This document shows positions 3,619 through 37,025 of a stretch of DNA of 45,960 bases, piece by piece (within the stretch, counting starts at the first letter, position 1; every line of letters starts with the position of its first letter). The stretch is from Oopsacas minuta (lineage: Eukaryota; Animalia; Porifera). The translations under genes were made by a program, and so were the position numbers. The stretch is taken from contig JAKMXF010000083.1 of assembly GCA_024704765.1 (NCBI GenBank), positions 1-45,960 on the forward strand, written 5' to 3'. The notes below the pieces were generated by a model. That model was not told the origin of the DNA, did not search any database, and saw only the letters and a program-made list of their open reading frames with translations.

Positions 3619-3619
3619 N

Positions 3620-5066: not shown

Positions 5067-7056
5067 CAGGGTTGGCAGGTTTTGTCCATGTGGTAAAAAC
5101 CGTTCTGTCCAAAACCTCCTGACTGGATAAAACTGGTCATAACCGGTAAAAACCTAATTGTAATACTAGTGCATGTTACTTGTATATTTAATATCTGAAT
5201 AAATACTTGTTGATAGTTTGGCGTTCGCTTTGAGAGCATTTTTCAAGATGAGTTCTAAGCCTCCCAGCCTTTCCGCTGATCATAGCACTACATTTTATAC
5301 ACATCGCTCGTATTTTTCCACCATCTTCAACTTGGATGAAAATTTCCATATTGAATCAATGGGCCTTCTTCCTTGTGCCATTTCAAACTGGTCAATTTAA
5401 GTAAGTAAGATATACAATCTGCACGATAGTATTCAATTTCTATAATATCACAAATGCTTTGGATAATTACACCCGTTTAGAAAGTATATATGTACGAAAA
5501 CGAGGGGTACTCAATAACTTTTGGGCCTAAGTATCAAAAAGCATCAATCTATATTTATTTTTAGTATAATTGTTCGAAATAGCATTCCTTAGTTTGACTA
5601 CTCTTGTTCATTCGTTTAAATCAAGCTTGAATAGGTTCTTTAAATTCCTTTTCGTTGATGTTTCCGATCACTTCTCTGAGGGCCCCCTCAAGTTCAGAAT
5701 TCGATGCAAAATTTCTGCCTTTAAGGCATTTTTTTATTCTAGGAAGAGCCAGAAGTCGCACGGTGCTAGATCTGGAGAATAAGCGGGGTGTGGCAAATAT
5801 GTAGTCCTGATTCTTCAATGAATTGTCTTGTCATTTTTGATGTATGAGAACTGGCATTATCGTGGTGCAAAAAAGTTCCCCTTAATCCTGTGTCAGGACG
5901 CTGTAAATTTATTGCTTTTATGACTAGAGGCAAACAACTCTCTGTATACTAGGTTGAATTAATTGTCTTACCAGGTTCAAGAGGTATAACAGTTTTAACA
6001 CCCGTTGTATTAAACAAAATTGTATACATTTGTTTCTTGGTGTACTGAGTTCTGCGAACCTTTGTTGGGGGACCTTCTCCAATTTCACACCTTCGCCGAC
6101 TCTTCTACTTTGTTTCTGGATCATAGTGATAGATCCATGTTTCATCACCAGTTATTATCTTGGAAACATCTCTACTGTTGCCGTTGTTGAATTTTGTAAG
6201 CATTTCATGGCACCATTTCACTCGATTCTGCTTCTACTCAGTATGAAGCTAATGTGGGATCCAGCGGGCACAAAGTTTACGTAACTGAAGGGATTGGTGT
6301 AAAACGTGTGCACTGCCCCGGATGAAATGCCAATTTCGTGCTGAATCCTCTCATATGTAACATTTGGGTCTGCTATCACGATGTCCTCAATTGACTCAAC
6401 AATTCCCTCTGTAACAGCGTATGGGGGTGGTCCAAGGCGGGGTTGGTCTTCAAGATGAAAATTCCCATACTTAAATTCTCTGTACCATCTTTTCACTGTT
6501 GCCGCAGATACCTTGTTATTTGGAAAGGCTGTACAGAAAATTTCGTGAAATTCTTTTATTGTTTCCAAAAGTTGAAACTGAAAAAGTATTATCGCACGAA
6601 TATCACGCCTTGATAACTGTATTGAGGATTTGGTAACTTAGGAATCCATAGATAATAAAACTACTGCTATCTAAAAGTATACAAGATAAAAGTTACAAGA
6701 TTTTCAGCGAAGTATATTTATCCCATGTTTATTCGAAACAAGTAATGGTTTACTTATATAAGTGCTCGCAACATAGTCAGGCTTAAAACTTATTGAGTAC
6801 CCCTCGTACTTTATTAGTATATTAATTGGTTGAAACCACACATTTTATAATCACTTTACCGTTTCATTGTAAGCCAGTGTCAATAGTATATTACCAAATT
6901 AAAATAAGATATCAACAAGTTATATATGTATTCTTATTATTGAAGGGTATAGAATTGACCAGTTTTGACCGGTTTCGACCAGTTTTGGCCGGTAAAAACC
7001 GGGTTTTTCCCACTGTCCGTCCAAAACCAGTTTTGGACAGGACAAATCCAACCCTG
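5067..7056. mobile_element. Non-autonomous hAT-type element inserted in the hAT transposase
   Basis: Perfect 8-bp TSD CTATAAAT (5059-5066 and 7057-7064), TIR CAGGGTTGG...CCAACCCTG, and subterminal AAAACTGGTC/ACCGGT repeats at both ends. Confidence 0.93.
5501..6806 (-). mobile_element. Near full-length mariner with frameshifted transposase
   Basis: TIRs CGAGGGGTACTCAATAA at both ends, right TA at 6807-6808. Minus-strand fragments TVKRWYREFKYG...LEDQPRLG, ITGDETWIYHYDPETK, PHPAYSPDLAPCDFWL. Confidence 0.92.
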
Positions 7057-7762: not shown

Positions 7763-9062
7763 TATACGTGGGACAGCGAATATGACAAGTATTGATAAAG
7801 GTGTAAAATCACAAATCCAGAATATTGTTCCAGAACCTTTTTTATGTTTTGTAAAACCACGGTGTAAATTTGGATCTTCAATATGCTATCGAAACCACTT
7901 GTTGGACTTATGACTTGATGCAGTATATAAATTGCCAATCAAATTTCATACGTGACAGCCGTAAAGATACGAAATAGTGAAGATATTGCAGAAGGAGCTT
8001 CATCCAGACGATGAACTGAATTCCGCTGTTCGTCGACCAGCTTGTCCAACTCAGTGGTAGCTGCAGAGGTTATAAGATAGCATGAGTTCATCTGTCTACA
8101 TATTTTACAAAAATGACATATCTTCAGTAGAAGATTTACAATTCGAAATTCGGATGTTGAAACGTGTAGTAAAGTCTGAAAAGTTAACAGTTTCATCCAT
8201 CACATCGTTCATTTCAATGTACAAGTCATTAGCTAAAGAGGTTAGAGATATGCTCCCTATGTTACACGGTTAGTAACCATTTTGCTGGTGGTGGGAGTCT
8301 CCGCAGGACGAAGCATTGGCGTACTTCGCCGACTCAAAACTGACGACACAACTATCGATTCTGGCAATCGAGAAGGAGAAATCTGCTGAGATAGACAGCA
8401 TGAAGATAGCAAGAGCGTTCATAAACACTGAACACCGTGAAGGAAGTTCGGGAGATTTCCAAAGCTCTAGTTTAGACTACCTAGATTACTAAATTGAGTG
8501 TTATTATTCATGCATTCATATCATTAAATCCACCCATGAAATACCAGCTTTCGACGCATCTGAGTGTTGATTGAAGTGGCAAATGAATTCGTTGGTGGAG
8601 GCTCAGATTATCGTCAATCTCTATTTTGAAAATTTGTATTGAATGATCTTAATTAAACACTTGATTCAATTATTTATTATCGTAAGAACATTTCATTATT
8701 TGTTAAAACTTATGTAAATATATAAATTGGCCTCACTTTAATTGCTTCCTAAGCACCTGAATTATCCACGGTACATGCAGGTCAGTGCCAGTAACTTGGT
8801 GTATTAGAATACTATGGCTCATCCAAAAAATTTAGTATGTATTATTGATGACATTGAATCTAACCTCAATCTATGATCATTATACTTAACCAGGGCCATT
8901 GGAACTTCAGAAAAGTGTGGCGGTTATCGCCATATTGAATAGTCTGCTGCCTCAAGCCGTCCGAGGTCAGACAGCATTGTACTTGACAACGAACAACTCA
9001 AGAAACTGATAGCAGACAACTATTGAGATTTAATATTTAAGATATAACCCTTTATTAGATAT

Positions 9063-9755
9063 ATGGCGTCTGCCTCTGCTAGAGGAAGTAGAGCCAAAGG
9101 TAAGAGCAAGACTCAGACGACCGGAATATTCTCAGAAATACAACACAAAGGTGCTCCACACAAATTAGCACCTATTGATCATATGGTGCTTATGCCTCTT
9201 CTAAGATCCAGAGATGTACCCAAATTGCTCAACTTCTCCGCTACCTATTATTTCAATCATGAATTGTGGCTAAATGCGTGGCAAGCTGCTTTGGGCAAAT
9301 CAGATTTTGCTGTCATCAAATCGATTCGTCTTTTTGTCCAGTTAAATTCCATCCATGCCTCAAATCTGGGAGCCTATTTCTTGCCAGATGGTTCAAAAGT
9401 AACTCTCCCCAAGGACATGATTTGTAAATCTGTACAAGGAACACAGCAATATAATTGCGCACCTGTAATCTCAACAGAGCCGAGTTCTCCATTAGACACC
9501 AGTTTCCAAGTTGTGAAAAGTGACTGTTTAGTGGCAGCCTTAGACCTGGTGTCACAAGGACTGGATCCTGCAGTACTTGTATTAGCATCTGCATACAATC
9601 CAGGGGGTGGGTATATGGAGGGGGCAGGTGCTCAAGAGGAGAATCTGTGTCGAAGAACAACTTTATGGCAAAATTTGATGGATCCATTTGGAGTTGGAGG
9701 TGAACGCAAATGGGTATATCCAATACCTGAATTTGGTGCTATCTACTCCCCTAAG
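9063..9755 (+). CDS. Bacterial-type poly(ADP-ribose) glycohydrolase (DUF2263/TIGR02452-like macrodomain), exon 1
   Basis: ATG-initiated 231 codons containing DCLVAA, PGGGYMEGAGAQEENLCRRT (GGG-X7-QEE PARG signature at 9603-9641) and YPIPEFGAIYSPK; ends at the phase-0 donor AAG|GTAAG at 9756. Confidence 0.9.
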
Positions 9756-11176
9756 GTAAGGCTTTTGTTAAAAGAAATGAAAATTTTAAGCCAGTTAGCC
9801 AACCCCAGCCCTGCATGAGCTTATTAGTTAGGTGTTAGGTATGTGCAGACAGAGATAGTATGCTGCTCGGGGGTCGTATTTCTACCCAAATTGCCCTAAG
9901 TACTTTTTGATTCAGTGATTATTATTAATTGAGGTATTAGCCTAGACTTGTGGAAATATTGTTTTAATCCAGGACCATGCAAGCCTAATTTTACCTGACC
10001 AGGTCAAACCTAATTAGAGTAGACATCAGGGCTCTGTCACGGCACAACTGGTCAGACCAGGACTAGAAGTCTATATGGAAGGTCTCTTACCGGAGGTCCA
10101 TTCAGTTATTATGCTTAGAACTGATTTATAGACATACATAACCATGTGATAGTTTAGTGGGCGCCAATACTGATCCTGAAAATCGTTCTACAAAGGGTGA
10201 ACCAGTTATGGGTAACACAACTGGACCGGTGTAAATCCTAGATTATACTCCGGTATGAAGTGGGCAAGCCCAGAACCTAACCTACTACGGAGGCCGGACC
10301 AGTTATGCAAGGTCGTACCTGTTATAGTTTGCCTTAACTGGTCCCGGAACAGTTAAAGCGTGACAGACTGACAGATCTCAATGGGTTGTGACTATTCTCT
10401 GATTCATTAAGATATACTGAGTAAAATATTATGCTATTATTAATACACAGTAATTTTTTAAAAATTTTCTGATATTTAATTCAAAACCGCATAGTTATTT
10501 AATAGAACAAACAAGCGACATGGACCTACGTCTTTTCTTATCGATTAAATTACATGCGAATATATATATATACGTATAGTTACCAACTATCTAGAATCTG
10601 GATATAGCCACTATTTTCAGTGCCCAGGCTGTGGCCTGGTCAAAACCGAGTCTGGAAAATTCTGCTCAGGTTTGACTTGGTCAGATTGCATTACTCTCAC
10701 GGTCCTGTAATCATATGATAAATTTCCTAATGCAGCTTTGAAAAATATTTATATGTATCGTGGAAGTACGACATATCTCTACGTAAGATATTTATATACA
10801 TACAAGTAATGCCTAAAATAGCCGAGAACAGCATTACATCCTACCAGTACAAAACATCCTCTGTACGTCGTACGGTAAAGAGAGAAATGTCGTATTAGTC
10901 TTGTAGAAAAAAGTCTCTTTTGGAAACTTGCTCCCATCGTATCTACAGCTTCATAACCCCTGAAGATATAATGAAACAAAACACGTGTGGAAAATTACCC
11001 TACGGCTAGATGCTAATATAAGCCAATTGGCAGGGAACCAGAGTAGCCAGACATATGGTCAAATACTTTGGAAAGTATTTAATACCAAATACAAATACAT
11101 TCGTAATTAGATAATGTTGATTCCCTTGTACAGTCGAAATTGAGTATTTCTTACGTCAGATTTTACCGATTACTAA

Positions 11177-11470
11177 CTAGGGGTGGTCTTGGTGCTATAG
11201 ACCCCCAAATAGACATTGGCCAGTTATCTAATCACCATATTGGTCATTTGTACTTTATATACCGATCTAATTGAATGATATAATGTTTAGAATCTTTTAT
11301 TAGGACTTAGAAATGGATCATTTTATATTCTATTAGGGTAACTAACGTATTCTTTGATGATTTATTATCTTATTGATTAATTACTTTCGTAATTAAATCA
11401 AATATTGAGTTTTATCGACCGATTTAAATAATTGTCGGCCATCTTCTGTTTTTAGACCCCTCCCCTAGTA
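11177..11470. repeat. Possible small MITE with CTAGGGG...CCCCTAG ends
   Basis: Short terminal inverted match CTAGGGG(T/A)GG only; no clear TSD. Confidence 0.35.
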
Positions 11471-11629
11471 TATTTGGGCTGGTGGCCCTTTCTCTATTGG
11501 ACATCTCATATAGTTGACAATTAGTTGGGAATTGTTTGGGGTATCACTTGTATTACTGAGTATTGTAGAAAATAGAATAAGAGTGAGTAATCATTAATAA
11601 TTTAAACACCATTATAGATTGATTAGAAG

Positions 11630-12811
11630 CAAGGACTACTAGAATGCAAGGGCTCCACAGACCCAAACCACGGCATGTACGGTGAGGAATGCATAGGCTG
11701 AATATTGATCTATCATAACTACTTTTTTCCTTGGAACTTGTATTTATGTGAGAAATTTCGTTAAAACTAATAACGAACTCAATTTCCTTTTTAACCCTGG
11801 ATGACATTGATTTCTTATAGATGACTGTGATAAATTATTGCTGTGCCTAGCACAGAGACAATGTAAGTTATTTACAATAATTGTATTACCAACATATGAT
11901 ATTCATGCATGTGTATGACTTCTCAAATACCTCCGTTGCTATGCAAATATATTTAAACAGATCCTGGCCATAACTGAAAAATGTTGATGATAGAGGTGCA
12001 TCTGATAAATGTAGAGCTCTATCATCAATTTATAATTATACCGATGTAAATTATAAATTGATACCGATTTCTCCGCAATAGGCGACCTCCTACTCATGAA
12101 TAATACAGTTTGATACCTAACCCTAACGATTAATAAGTTATGAAGTAACCCACCATATATGGTCAATCTCGATACATGACGTAATAACTTAAATAACCGT
12201 TAGAGTTAGGAATCGAAACTGTCATGAATAGGAAGTCCCCTATTGCGGATACATCTCTATCATCAATATTTTTCAGTTATGGCATGAATCTGTTTAAATA
12301 TATTTGTATAGCAACGGAGGAGTGTGTCAAAATTTCATCAACATTTCACCTATTTTGGAAACACTTCCATGTCGCTAAATTTCCATGCAAGAAGGAAGTG
12401 TCATCCTTTCTAAATCATGGTCAAAATCGGGCTCGATATATGACCAAAATCGTCCAAAAAGGGCTATTAAGCAATGAAAGGATGACAAATCATAAATTTG
12501 AGAAGTAATACACATGTTTGAATATCATGTGTTGATAATACATTTATAGTAAATAATTTGCATAGTTTCTGTGCTATGCATCTCAATAATTTAATACAGT
12601 CATCCATCCATGCTTTAAAGAAATTGTCAGTTATGACGAAATTTCCATATAAATAAATTTATCAAATGATTTACTTGCATTTATGCACGAAAAGTATGGA
12701 ACAATTCCTACTTCCTAGGAAAACAGCAGTTATTTGTAGATTAATGTTCAGCCTATGCAATTCATCACCGTGGTTTGGCCTTGTCGCGTTCTTGTTTTCT
12801 AGTAGTCCTTG
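11630..12811. mobile_element. 1.2-kb foldback element, P-superfamily/Galileo-like
   Basis: Diverged inverted arms run from CAAGGACTACTAGAA to TTCTAGTAGTCCTTG with the centre near 12160; 7-bp direct repeat TTAGAAG at 11623-11629 and 12812-12818. Confidence 0.8.
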
Positions 12812-13322
12812 TTAGAAGTTAAAATTAACTGCGATGCATATAGATAACTTATTTTTTTGCAAATCAGAAGCGAATCCAGAAATACTAGGAGGGGATTCAG
12901 TTGTACACCAGGTAGAGAGCAACTAAGGGAGGGAAATTCTGAAATGTTTCACCATTAAACAGTATTTTTATGCAAATTTTAATTTTACATATTGTAAACC
13001 TTAGTCGACGTATTTTAGACAAATTAATGACATATATAAAGTTTGAATTTTCTAAAAGTTTCCAACCCAAACTCCTCTGTCAATTTATCTAAAAAGATTT
13101 TGAGGTATCTGACACAGAATAATCTCTAAGAAGTTGATACATATTGTGAATACCCAGGGAATTATCTTGAGTGGTGCGGTGGTGGTGCAACGCAGCGCCT
13201 CAGTATTCGGGTATTGCTCATCACTTGAGAACAATGACAATAATGTTTAGACGTATACGAAGTATCCGATTACCTATAACTACGTGATAAATAGTGCAGC
13301 TGTAATATTTACATATCGTTAG

Positions 13323-13509
13323 GTTTTGGTGTTTCGAGGTGAAGAGAAGTCTGGGTACGCTTATTTAGCTGAACCTGTCAGATTGGGATTTATCAACTCA
13401 TGTGCTTACAGAGATCCTCCTGTACAAACTGGTAAGGCAGGTGAAACCAGATTGAGTGGTAAAATAATTGGGAATTACCTTAACAAAATCAGAGCAATAT
13501 TTAGTGTCG
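13323..13509 (+). CDS. Bacterial-type PARG, exon 2
   Basis: AG acceptor at 13321-13322, phase 0. Encodes VLVFRGEEKSGYAYLAEPVRLGFINSCAYRDPPVQTGKAGETRLSGKIIGNYLNKIRAIFSV, continuing the family alignment. Donor G|GTAAGT at 13510. Confidence 0.85.
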
Positions 13510-13826
13510 GTAAGTTTGAAACAATTACATGATTACAAACGTAGTTACGTAGCTGAATATGAATTAATCTAGATCTATTATACAAATCTCAACTATTCGT
13601 GGGTCACAGTTTATCAATATACCGTATTGCTCTGAACAAGTGCCCGGGTATTCTCCTACACGATAAAATAAGCACTGAGGCTCTTATCTAGGGAAATACA
13701 GCACCTAAAAGTTATTACTCGAAATAGCGGCTATCTGCTAATTCCAAGGCTAACTATTTCAAATGTCAATGCTAAAATTAGTTTCAACTGTAAGTAAGGG
13801 GGTAATCAACTTTTGACTACCAGATT

Positions 13827-14330: not shown

Positions 14331-15619
14331 TGATAATAGTTCTTATATACGATATGCTGGTTATAAGAACATTGTGTCTAGTTCCCAACGATGTCCTTAT
14401 AACCGGCATTGACTGAACTATAAATGGCTATGCTGATTCGACCATAATTTCCACGAATATTGAGTTATTATTGGATACTGGGAAAACATGTGACATCCAT
14501 GGTCTGTACGAGAACTCAGAAACGTGCGAACCTTATCATGAAAAAAATTTTTATTTTTTACAGAGAAGGTTTTAGATTATTTGGTATTTCGATATTTTGA
14601 ATAATTAACGTCACCCATGGTTTCAAAGATGGAGCAGTTCGTAATATATATTTGCCAATTACGCTAACAAATGATGTCACGTCGATCTGAAAGCATTTTT
14701 GAATTCTTACATACCAAAATACATTTACTCTGGTGAAAATGGACCAGTTTCTTATTATCGGCGATTATAGAATTTCCCATCAAAGTATATCCACTTCATG
14801 TTTCCCTGGTCCAGTGAAAATTGACTCAGTAATCAGGCCTTATCTTTAGTAGGTTATGGTAACTTATCACCAATTGATCCAAGGATGTTATCATACAAAT
14901 ATCACAAAATGGCCATAATAAAGTTCTCAAGTTCCAGAGTTATAGTAGTGACCATGGATGGCACATTTCTGCTATCATTCACCTATAACTTGACATCCTT
15001 TAATGTTAGGGCCAATCATCTTGTAAACATATGGCACAGTGGGTTATTTTGGGTAAATATTTCCAGTAGGCTATAACTTCAACAAATTTTATTATTTTCC
15101 GCTGAATATATTGGCTACTGGGGTTTTAACTAAAGACCATTTTTTTTAGCATGTCAGATTTTGAGAATGAATTAGCATTTGAAAATTATGAGGTCATATT
15201 TAATTTCCAAAAATATTGACATTTTCTTCGTTTTTATATTTCATGACTATATAGGATATTCATATAGTATCTTGTTTCAATAACGAATACTAGTAATTAG
15301 GCAATGCATTAGTTATTGAAGAATCATATCCTAATCTTGTATGAAGCATAATNTGCAGTTGAAGTACATAGGCTATTAATTACAGTGGAGTTCGCTTATT
15401 AGCAACTCGGATTTTGCAGAGATTTGGTTGCTAATAGGGCAACGAAATTAACATTATAATCCCGTTTGGGACCCGAAAGCTGGTTGCTAATGAGCAATAT
15501 TACTAATAAGCTAACTGCATTGTATATAAAAACGAAAACTTCCAAATTTATCTTGGGGGGCGAGAAAAACTTTTGGGGGAGCAACCGCCCCCCCTTGCCC
15601 CCCCGTAGCTACGTGCCTG

Positions 15620-35590: not shown

Positions 35591-36099
35591 CAAGGATATG
35601 GGAAATCTGGTAAATACTATAAATTGGCTATGCTTATTGGGCAATAATTTTAACGATTATCGAATTCCAATTGGATATTCATGAAATGTGTCATCCACGG
35701 TATCTCCAGTAACTCTTGCAAAACGAGGTAACTTTATAATGACCAAATTTTGATATTTTGTAAATAGAATCTATAGATCATTTCACAACTTCTCTTTGAA
35801 ATGAAAGATGAAATATTTACCATTCTACAAGGCATAAAGGAATGGCATATATTGAACAAATAAATGCTTAACAAACACATATTTCCACATATTCGTAAAT
35901 TTCTAGCATATGCATAATGGTTGATAATATATTATTCTACAAATAAACAATACAAATATTCGCGCAAAAATGCACCGTTTCTGGGATATTCAATCGACAC
36001 GTAAATACCTTTATCTCGGACCGCATCCCTGCTCCAAAATTCACAACAGGTTAGCAGTCCTTATATTGGAGTAGGCTATGCTCAAGTCCATTAAATTTG

Positions 36100-37025
36100 G
36101 TAGGCAATATATAAATTCTCGACAATATCGAATTGGTATATTTTGGCTGGAATAAATCTGTTAATATTTATAGATAATAATCAATACAAGTCATGTAATC
36201 CGACTATCCCCAGTTAGAGATGAAGTCATCTGTTCCGGCAATATGTTGTTAAAAATCTCACAATTTCTAAAGCTCTGATAAACGATCACTAGTGCGTCTT
36301 TGAGTTCAAGATAAATACTAAGTGATCTGAGGATGTTAGACAGGAAATTTAAATTTTTGTAATTATAAAATGATCATGGATAGCCATCTTTTGGCCAATA
36401 TCCACTTATAACTCGATTGTCGTGAGAATTGTAGTCAAATCAGTCTAGCCAATATGTAATGCATACCCAACTTCCCATACCCTTGTAATATATTTTGATA
36501 CGATTTCTCTAACCGGTGTAATGCAATCATGAATATGCCCATATTTGGTCATTATCAAGATTTATACAAAAGTGCTTAGAGATATCGTATCAAAATATAT
36601 TACAAGGGGATGGAAAGTAAGCTATGTAGTACATATTGGCTGGAGTAATTTGAATAAAACTCTAGCGACAATCGAGTTATAAGTGGATAATGGCCAAAAA
36701 AGGGCCATCCATAGTATCTAGTATAACTCAATAACGTGACAACTGTATACTTACAAAAATTCAAATTTCATGTATAAACAGCCTCAGATCACTTGAAATT
36801 AATCCTAAATCAAAGACACACTAGTGATCATTTATCAAAGCTTTTGAAATGGGAGATTATTAACAACTTGTTGCCCTGTTAACCAAATAGATGACGTCAT
36901 TTCGATGGGGAATACGTAGTTGGATTACATGACTTGCATTGATTACTATCTATCAATAATACATTTATTCGAGCAAAAAAGTACTAATTCGATATTATCG
37001 AGAATATTGTTTTCATATGGCAACA
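36100..37025. repeat. Diverged foldback of about 0.9 kb
   Basis: Inverted pairs TATCCACTTATAACTCGATTGTCG / CGACAATCGAGTTATAAGTGGATA, CCCTTGTAATATATTTTGATACGAT / ATCGTATCAAAATATATTACAAGGG and CAAGTCATGTAATCC / GGATTACATGACTTG, centred near 36540. Confidence 0.8.

Follow-up and report, generated by a model that had tools for sequence, protein, structure and literature searches.

Does the compact, microbial-type poly(ADP-ribose) glycohydrolase (PARG) gene found in the genome assembly of the glass sponge Oopsacas minuta (Hexactinellida) belong to the sponge, where does it come from, and is it complete? The window analysed here comprises positions 1-45,960 of the O. minuta scaffold JAKMXF010000083.1 (GCA_024704765.1). 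In the public annotation, the gene is listed as NCBI LOD99_10982, a "hypothetical protein" of 332 residues (P0001) with the UniRef name "microbial-type PARG catalytic domain-containing protein". Its family membership is thus already auto-annotated publicly, and eukaryotic members of the family are already documented. New in this study are the conservation of the gene across glass sponges with fixed introns, its expression in Aphrocallistes, its placement in a eukaryotic clade and the recognition that the O. minuta gene model is truncated. Overall, the locus probably represents the first two exons of the O. minuta orthologue of a three-exon glass-sponge microbial-type PARG gene, the third exon of which is absent, with an assembly cause as the likeliest explanation.

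The exons were searched singly, and residues 1-293 of the public protein P0001 were taken as the O. minuta sequence for alignments and trees. Exon 1 alone matched the Pfam family PF10021 (PARG_cat_microb) with an E value of 1.2e-25 and 91 bits (cut-off 23.5) and the NCBIfam model TIGR02452 with an E value of 1.2e-15 and 57.8 bits (cut-off 50). Both scores lie above the respective cut-offs and bear out an earlier note, made from the letters of this DNA, which had proposed a DUF2263/TIGR02452-like PARG. The canonical PARG family PF05028 gave no match, and a Pfam scan at E values up to 1 returned PF10021 only. Exon 2 was matched by a hidden Markov model (HMM) built from full-length homologues (E 2.3e-18). 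Based on a word search with exon 1, we identified seven close sponge-type homologues with 63-76% amino acid identity. Five of the seven (loci L002-L006) each come from a different ENA assembly and lie on contigs 0.14-1.0 Mb long, with coverage labels of 115x-282x in the contig names. The sixth (P0008, 368 residues) is a complete coding sequence on a 1285-nt contig (L001) of SRR29297749, a metatranscriptome of the glass sponge Aphrocallistes beatrix (PMC11525543). The seventh (P0002) lies on contigs of at most 4 kb, and the exon structure was drawn from L002-L006 plus P0008. The following features of the O. minuta gene were assigned, with positions referring to the window:

9063-9755, forward strand: exon 1, 231 codons, phase 0 end, with the PF10021 and TIGR02452 matches; same boundary in L002-L006

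9081-9110, forward strand: basic patch RGSRAKGKSK, residues 7-16, within a tail predicted to be disordered

9576-9593, forward strand: LVLASA strand, with Val at the Asn position of the usual LN(F/M)AS, from alignments to the Thermomonospora curvata (3SIG) and Deinococcus radiodurans (5ZDx) structures

9603-9641, forward strand: PARG signature and catalytic loop GGG-X7-QEE, GGGYMEGAGAQEE, residues 181-193, aligning with the signature of 3SIG and 5ZDx

9756-13322, forward strand: intron 1, 3567 nt, GT...AG, phase 0; same position in L002-L006

13323-13509, forward strand: exon 2, 62 codons plus one nucleotide, phase 1 end (G/GTAAGT donor); boundaries common to all relatives

13510-13516, forward strand: intron 2 donor, GTAAGTT, intact; final stretch homologous to the relatives

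All five genomic loci (L002-L006) contain exactly three exons, and all of their introns are of the GT-AG type, as is the first O. minuta intron, which the earlier note had described correctly as canonical. The junctions are identical throughout: the first follows ...YSPK (phase 0) and the second follows ...FSV plus one base (phase 1). Intron lengths vary among the relatives, from about 0.3 to 4.4 kb for intron 1 and from about 0.13 to 1.2 kb for intron 2. The A. beatrix transcript (L001) runs through both junctions without a break, the introns having been spliced out. For O. minuta itself, the support for the 9755/13323 junction is indirect. Because the junctions are identical in five assemblies and the A. 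beatrix transcript reads across both of them, the gene is a fixed, spliced host gene of Hexactinellida, expressed in at least one species (Aphrocallistes). In 5/5 of these loci, SH3BP5 lies next upstream in the same orientation, and further animal-type genes, including UVSSA and an IFT122-like gene, are found nearby. Exons 1 and 2 of O. minuta form a frame of 293 codons with no stop and no frameshift, exon 2 shares 80% DNA identity with exon 2 of L002, and the pairwise ratio of nonsynonymous to synonymous substitution rates (dN/dS) of the O. minuta exons versus the nearest relatives ranges between 0.10 and 0.16. Judged by these substitution ratios, the gene is under purifying selection.

These data also bear on contamination. 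The window is eukaryotic in content, with an MT-A70 gene, an rve integrase and the remnant of a mariner helix-turn-helix (HTH) domain. Together with the identical introns in five assemblies and the spliced A. beatrix transcript, this agrees with the earlier statement that the gene is not bacterial contamination. Holobiont DNA was the source material of the assembly (PMC10280926), so that the scaffold or the gene might in principle derive from another eukaryote living in the sponge sample, but we regard such an origin as scarcely credible. The guanine-plus-cytosine content of the scaffold is about 35% and the value reported for the O. minuta genome is 36 +/- 2.1% (PMC10280926); orthologues of the same structure lie on the long, high-coverage contigs of five other assemblies beside SH3BP5, UVSSA and the IFT122-like gene; and a further orthologue is present in the A. 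beatrix transcriptome.

Evidence for the macrodomain fold comes from the A. beatrix orthologue P0008 and not from the O. minuta product. The AlphaFold model of P0008 has a mean predicted local distance difference test score (pLDDT) of 90.6 and a predicted template modelling score (pTM) of 0.90, and its best Foldseek matches were the PARGs of T. curvata (TcPARG; 3SIH, E 9e-18, target TM 0.77-0.81) and D. radiodurans (DrPARG). In terms of this fold, the basic disordered tail and the helical extension at the N-terminus are encoded by exon 1, as is the first half of the PARG macrodomain with its catalytic loop, and exon 2 codes for central strands plus one helix. TcPARG (3SIG/3SIH) and DrPARG (5ZDA-5ZDG) belong to the same Pfam family, carry the same GGG-X6-8-QEE loop and share the fold of the P0008 model, whereas they are only 25-30% identical to the sponge protein. 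The sponge gene differs from both in being spliced and eukaryotic, and in that its diphosphate-loop exon is absent from the window. The C-terminal motif DDHNA...HNPEGNFKPF likewise separates the sponge protein from TcPARG and DrPARG; it is shared instead with close eukaryotic and Bacteroidales-type homologues.

The catalytic loop was found intact, as the earlier note had stated, and G180, G181, Q189, E190 and E191 (P0008 numbering) are invariant across the 40-sequence alignment. The unusual LVLASA was likewise read correctly: its Val, located before the catalytic loop, aligns with the conserved Asn in the LNFAS of TcPARG and DrPARG. In the family alignment, this column contains V, I or C in all sponges and in five other eukaryotic members (P0009, P0014, P0026, P0029 and P0038), and N elsewhere. 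Since the replacement is common to all sponge sequences and V/I/C also occurs in these five members, the alignment marks it as a variant that the clade tolerates, not as a unique lesion. The description of the N-terminus held in part. The basic patch is present, but the extension relative to TcPARG comprises about 94 residues instead of about 60, and it consists mostly of confident helices: in the P0008 model, residues ~1-20, including the patch, are disordered (pLDDT below 55), and residues ~22-102 form confident helices that are largely alignable with other family members. K/R-rich N-termini are kept in all sponge-type sequences, and this conserved basic tail may serve as a nuclear localisation signal. 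Within alignment columns 1-60, the sequences of Balamuthia, Rotaria, P0009, P0014, P0029 and P0038 begin with a K/R-rich stretch and then a short PFGI motif, and the sponges carry a conserved G[IT]F[AS][ED][IV]QHKGAPHK in its place; both look like short linear motifs.

An intact orthologue comprises the short disordered basic tail, the helical N-terminal extension and the PARG macrodomain, the latter with a GGG-X7-QEE catalytic loop from exon 1 and a GCGAY diphosphate-binding loop from exon 3. Its mechanism is predicted from the enzymes of T. curvata and D. radiodurans: the protein would bind a terminal ADP-ribose, with the exon-3 loop and the Gln of QEE holding the diphosphate, and would cleave the ribose-ribose bond (2'-O-C1'') with the second of the two glutamates as acid (PMC4030884, PMC8120803). 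Canonical PARG (PF05028, for example human PARG) has the same catalytic signature and the same proposed ribose-ribose bond hydrolysis (PMC4030884), whereas the sponge protein has neither the accessory domain nor the tyrosine clasp and matches PF10021 only. Hydrolytic activity is known for TcPARG, DrPARG and SCO0909 (PMC6445106, PMC11833690), and hydrolysis of poly(ADP-ribose) (PAR) is the predicted activity of the members of this eukaryotic clade. As bacterial-type PARGs also strip ADP-ribose from the 2'-OH of RNA and from 5'-phosphate ends (PMC11833690), nucleic-acid substrates are possible for the sponge enzyme as well.

The earlier note had treated 9063-13509 as the whole gene, and this view has to be abandoned. 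Every relative (6/6) possesses a third exon of 77 highly conserved residues (A[IL]EQGHDS.VLSAYGCGAY.NPP...FAIL[DN]DHNA...HNPEGNFKPF), which codes for two core strands and the GCGAY diphosphate-binding loop. We found this exon nowhere in the 45,960 bases of the window on either strand: tblastn with thirteen homologues gave nothing significant beyond exon 2, a scan of all six frames of the window for the exon 3 motif gave no match, and the HMM of full-length homologues gave no match beyond exon 2 in all stop-to-stop pieces of the window. DNA homology to L002 ends at position 13516, 7 nt into intron 2. Weak tblastn matches of the C-terminal part near 29.8 kb were considered as exon 3 and rejected on inspection, the HMM scores in this region being noise. 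A word search with the L002 exon-3 peptide for an O. minuta exon 3 elsewhere returned two unrelated short matches only, a blank that is uninformative. Two further features of the window are relevant here:

13573-13691, forward strand: NCBI terminal exon of LOD99_10982, 39 codons plus stop, with no counterpart in any family member

15353-15353, no strand: single-N scaffold join, 1.84 kb past exon 2, candidate site of the loss of exon 3 from the assembly

The tail of P0001 encoded by this annotated terminal exon (residues 294-332) matches no relative's exon 3, and 13573-13691 shows no similarity to the L002 locus. The NCBI terminal exon is thus probably a gene-predictor artefact and the annotated C-terminus spurious. 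In the P0008 model, residues 292-368 supply a strand (299-302), the GCGAY loop (306-310), a helix (314-325), a further strand (336-340) and the C-terminal helix. The GCGAY loop of the sponge exon 3 aligns with GCGVF of DrPARG, in which ADP-ribose is bound at its pyrophosphate by main-chain amides (Gly224, Gly226, Val227 and Phe228; PMC6445106). Judged by the model, a protein ending after exon 2 would scarcely be able to adopt the macrodomain fold or to bind its substrate. The product as assembled contains neither a diphosphate loop of the form G-C-G-[AV]-[FY] nor the C-terminal strands; the family assignment of the gene stands. A working enzyme in O. minuta is left in question because the scaffold copy has no diphosphate-loop exon. 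Comparative studies using the public protein LOD99_10982 should therefore be made with caution, as its C-terminus is spurious and an essential exon is absent.

Two explanations for the absent exon have to be weighed. The "contig" is in fact a scaffold of seven pieces, with single-N positions at 3619, 15353, 28079, 31024, 35429 and 41457, and because it was stitched together by these six joins, errors of order or orientation are possible anywhere in the window. Copies of a dispersed repeat with 70-75% identity lie at 14417-14993 and 35616-36748, the former between exon 2 and the scaffold join. For the published assembly, SSPACE and GapFiller were used and scaffolds under 1 kb were discarded, and the gene models were obtained from BRAKER and Augustus (PMC10280926). 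The single-N joins, the dispersed repeats just downstream of exon 2 and the discarding of short scaffolds all count for an assembly cause. We lean towards an assembly cause, a gap or a mis-join within a second intron rich in repeats, combined with a predictor-made terminal exon, because the frame is unbroken over 293 codons, the donor of intron 2 is preserved and dN/dS is low (~0.1-0.16). The absent exon is one more sign that the assembly of this scaffold is unreliable. The competing account is a real truncation, in which exon 3 was deleted or displaced in O. minuta, for example by transposon activity, leaving a young pseudogene or a truncated protein that would be unable to hydrolyse ADP-ribose without the diphosphate loop and two core strands. 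We consider this rather unlikely, though several observations speak for it and weigh against our preferred interpretation. Exon 3 was found on neither strand of the window, and homology breaks off 7 nt into intron 2. In addition, uninterrupted sequence continues for 1.84 kb past exon 2, which is longer than the intron 2 of any relative. SH3BP5, upstream in all five relatives, was not found in the window by a relaxed search. In exon 2, O. minuta alone has replacements at four sites where the other six sequences do not vary, which could hint at relaxed constraint, and many gene losses have been reported for its genome (PMC10280926). As regards the predicted activity of the clade members, the Asn-to-Val change sits next to the active site. 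On the other side, a frame kept free of stops and frameshifts, the low dN/dS and an intact donor do not fit well with a decaying gene, one of the joins lies 1.84 kb downstream, and intron 1 is already 3.6 kb long in O. minuta, so that a long, repeat-bearing intron 2 is credible.

The question of origin was addressed with a search using full-length P0008, in which the best 120 of 755 matches were listed, most of them without a taxon name; the bacterial sample for the trees was drawn from these 120. Among the matches listed, the best non-sponge sequences are eukaryotic (44-46% identity) and include Amoebozoa (Balamuthia, Stenamoeba, Arcella, Pyxidicula, Cavostelium and Pelomyxa), Ancoracysta, Eutreptiella and Paratrimastix as well as animals, namely the anthozoans Exaiptasia and Montipora and bdelloid rotifers of the genus Rotaria. 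Bacteroidales-type bacterial proteins come next, with 42-43% identity. We calculated one tree with FastTree (116 rows) and one with IQ-TREE under LG+C20 with posterior mean site frequencies (PMSF; quick search, 52 rows). In both trees, all named eukaryotes fall within one clade (35-40 eukaryote-type rows), split from the sampled bacterial rows with 97-98% Shimodaira-Hasegawa (SH)-type support. The sponges form a clade with 100% support, in which Aphrocallistes is the sister of all other members and O. minuta clusters with L002 and L006. Resolution is poor inside the eukaryotic clade, and no clade of sponges, cnidarians and rotifers was recovered in the free trees. Forcing these three groups into one clade costs 46.6 log-likelihood (lnL) units, with p 0.065 in the approximately unbiased (AU) test, and a clade of sponges and cnidarians, at a cost of 15.6 lnL units, is not rejected (p 0.29). 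The Rotaria gene contains five introns, 0/5 of which are at sponge positions.

Compared with published work, the sponge gene resembles the eukaryotic "bactPARGs" of filamentous fungi, Monosiga brevicollis, Naegleria and Bigelowiella (Perina et al. 2014, PMC4245714), which are likewise single-domain proteins encoded in nuclear genomes, show a similarly patchy distribution and sometimes occur alongside canonical PARG. Such bacterial-type PARGs were reported in all eukaryotic supergroups except Plantae, including the choanoflagellate Monosiga (Perina et al. 2014, PMC4245714). The same study lists the demosponge Amphimedon with canonical PARGs only and does not mention glass sponges and anthozoans. 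What distinguishes the glass-sponge gene from the bactPARGs described there is its fixation across several hexactinellid genomes with conserved introns. The homologues from Exaiptasia (AC249_AIPGENE3144), Montipora capricornis and Rotaria sp. belong to the same eukaryotic clade and are 38-45% identical to the sponge protein. The Rotaria homologue, starting with MASAN, has a basic N-terminus too. The anthozoan and rotifer proteins keep the Asn that is replaced by Val in sponges, and they show no firm sister relationship to the sponge sequences. The premise of the earlier note that animals normally lack the compact type was too strong in view of these close homologues. Hexactinellida can be added to the short list of animals with a single-domain microbial-type PARG, the others being anthozoans and bdelloid rotifers, and the sponge gene is useful for reconstructing gain and loss of ADP-ribose erasers in early animals.

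Based on these trees, the gene appears to be a member of a eukaryotic clade of the family and long-standing in Hexactinellida. Since the named eukaryotic homologues form a clade apart from the sampled bacterial sequences, a recent import from bacteria is unlikely. Ancient eukaryotic ancestry with patchy retention is plausible as the simplest account. The earlier note had proposed either an old horizontal acquisition or patchy retention. Direct bacterial acquisition does not agree with the all-eukaryote clade apart from the bacterial rows, and the retention alternative of the note fits better, with p 0.29 in the AU test for sponges and cnidarians together. Among the matches listed, nesting within or a sister position to a bacterial donor clade, the pattern by which phylogeny would have pointed to horizontal transfer, was not seen; instead, there was the 97-98% split from the Bacteroidales-type rows. 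Ordinary vertical descent through animals was not clearly recovered either, given that the free tree contained no animal clade, the AU tests gave p 0.065 and 0.29, and the Rotaria introns are not shared, with interior branches poorly resolved. A direct and relatively recent bacterial transfer into the sponge lineage followed by intron gain appears very improbable to us. The family is mainly bacterial, and the identity of the Bacteroidales-type proteins among the matches listed is near that of the best non-sponge eukaryotes, but the branch that parts all named eukaryotes, sponges included, from the sampled bacteria is well supported, and the gene with its two fixed introns is older than the split between Aphrocallistes and the Oopsacas group.

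A stronger contender, possible though on balance not preferred by us, is lateral acquisition by a hexactinellid ancestor from a protist, such as an amoebozoan-like prey organism or symbiont, with the cnidarian and rotifer copies as separate acquisitions. The free trees do split sponges, cnidarians and rotifers and place the sponge clade among amoebozoan and unnamed eukaryotic rows. The cost of the all-animal constraint and the five unshared Rotaria introns point in the same direction, as does the lack of homologues from other animal phyla among the best 120 of 755 matches. These arguments are tempered by the poor resolution inside the eukaryotic clade, by the sponge-cnidarian clade that the AU test does not reject, by the listing of only the best 120 matches, most without a taxon name, and by the bacterial-type PARG of a choanoflagellate (Perina et al. 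2014, PMC4245714), which fits a presence in the holozoan ancestor. A more far-reaching version of ancient retention, which we regard as doubtful, holds that a microbial-type PARG of the holozoan ancestor was lost by most animals but retained by glass sponges, and perhaps by anthozoans, and that it acts as a repair or defence enzyme and not on protein-bound PAR. As part of this same doubtful proposal, the enzyme may strip ADP-ribose from RNA or DNA that ADP-ribosyltransferase toxins of bacteria have modified, as recently shown for bacterial-type PARGs (PMC11833690). The features cited for it are specific to the clade, namely the Val for Asn by the catalytic loop, the structured helical N-extension and the conserved basic tail. 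If true, such a role would suit a filter feeder constantly exposed to bacteria.

Within the homologue of Rotaria sp. Silwood2 (L008, 6001-9524; CAJOBN010000854.1), one of the five GT-AG introns interrupts the catalytic loop. The gene model reads GGG-X9-QEE, compared with X7 in its paralogue P0020, and the two extra residues fall at the splice junction, which may be an annotation slip.

Repeats are a recurrent feature of the O. minuta locus. The earlier note had called the first intron "TE-filled" (transposable elements), which proved partly correct. It contains one large element:

11630-12811, no strand: foldback-type long inverted repeat in intron 1, ~1.2 kb, arms of ~530 nt with 74-90% complementarity, centre near 12160

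Self-BLAST resolved this repeat into the inverted pairs 11630-11736/12712-12811, 11817-11928/12496-12607 and 11930-12002/12248-12320, and it is probably a non-autonomous DNA element. No transposase domain was detected by Pfam on the open reading frames (ORFs) of intron 1 or of the sequence after exon 2, and the ORFs of the foldback repeat carry no Pfam domain. A 53-nt inverted pair is located at 14488-14540/14914-14966. Upstream of the gene, an ORF of 116 residues at 6218-6568 on the reverse strand contains the HTH domain of Mos1/mariner transposases (PF17906, E 1e-5) and represents a mariner remnant, 2.5 kb from the PARG start. Transposons were also observed in the relatives: a FLYWCH+MULE transposase gene lies between SH3BP5 and the PARG gene in L002 (4636-8749) and L006 (7105-8820), with an additional hAT-like gene in L002, and both of these closest relatives possess a long first intron of 3.7-4.4 kb. 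The neighbourhood of the PARG gene is a transposon landing zone in several species. Finally, an NCBI-annotated gene of 114 residues at 8082-8492 on the forward strand, 570 nt upstream of the PARG start codon and with no recorded Pfam match, could be either a small gene of its own or a wrongly annotated 5' portion of the PARG locus.

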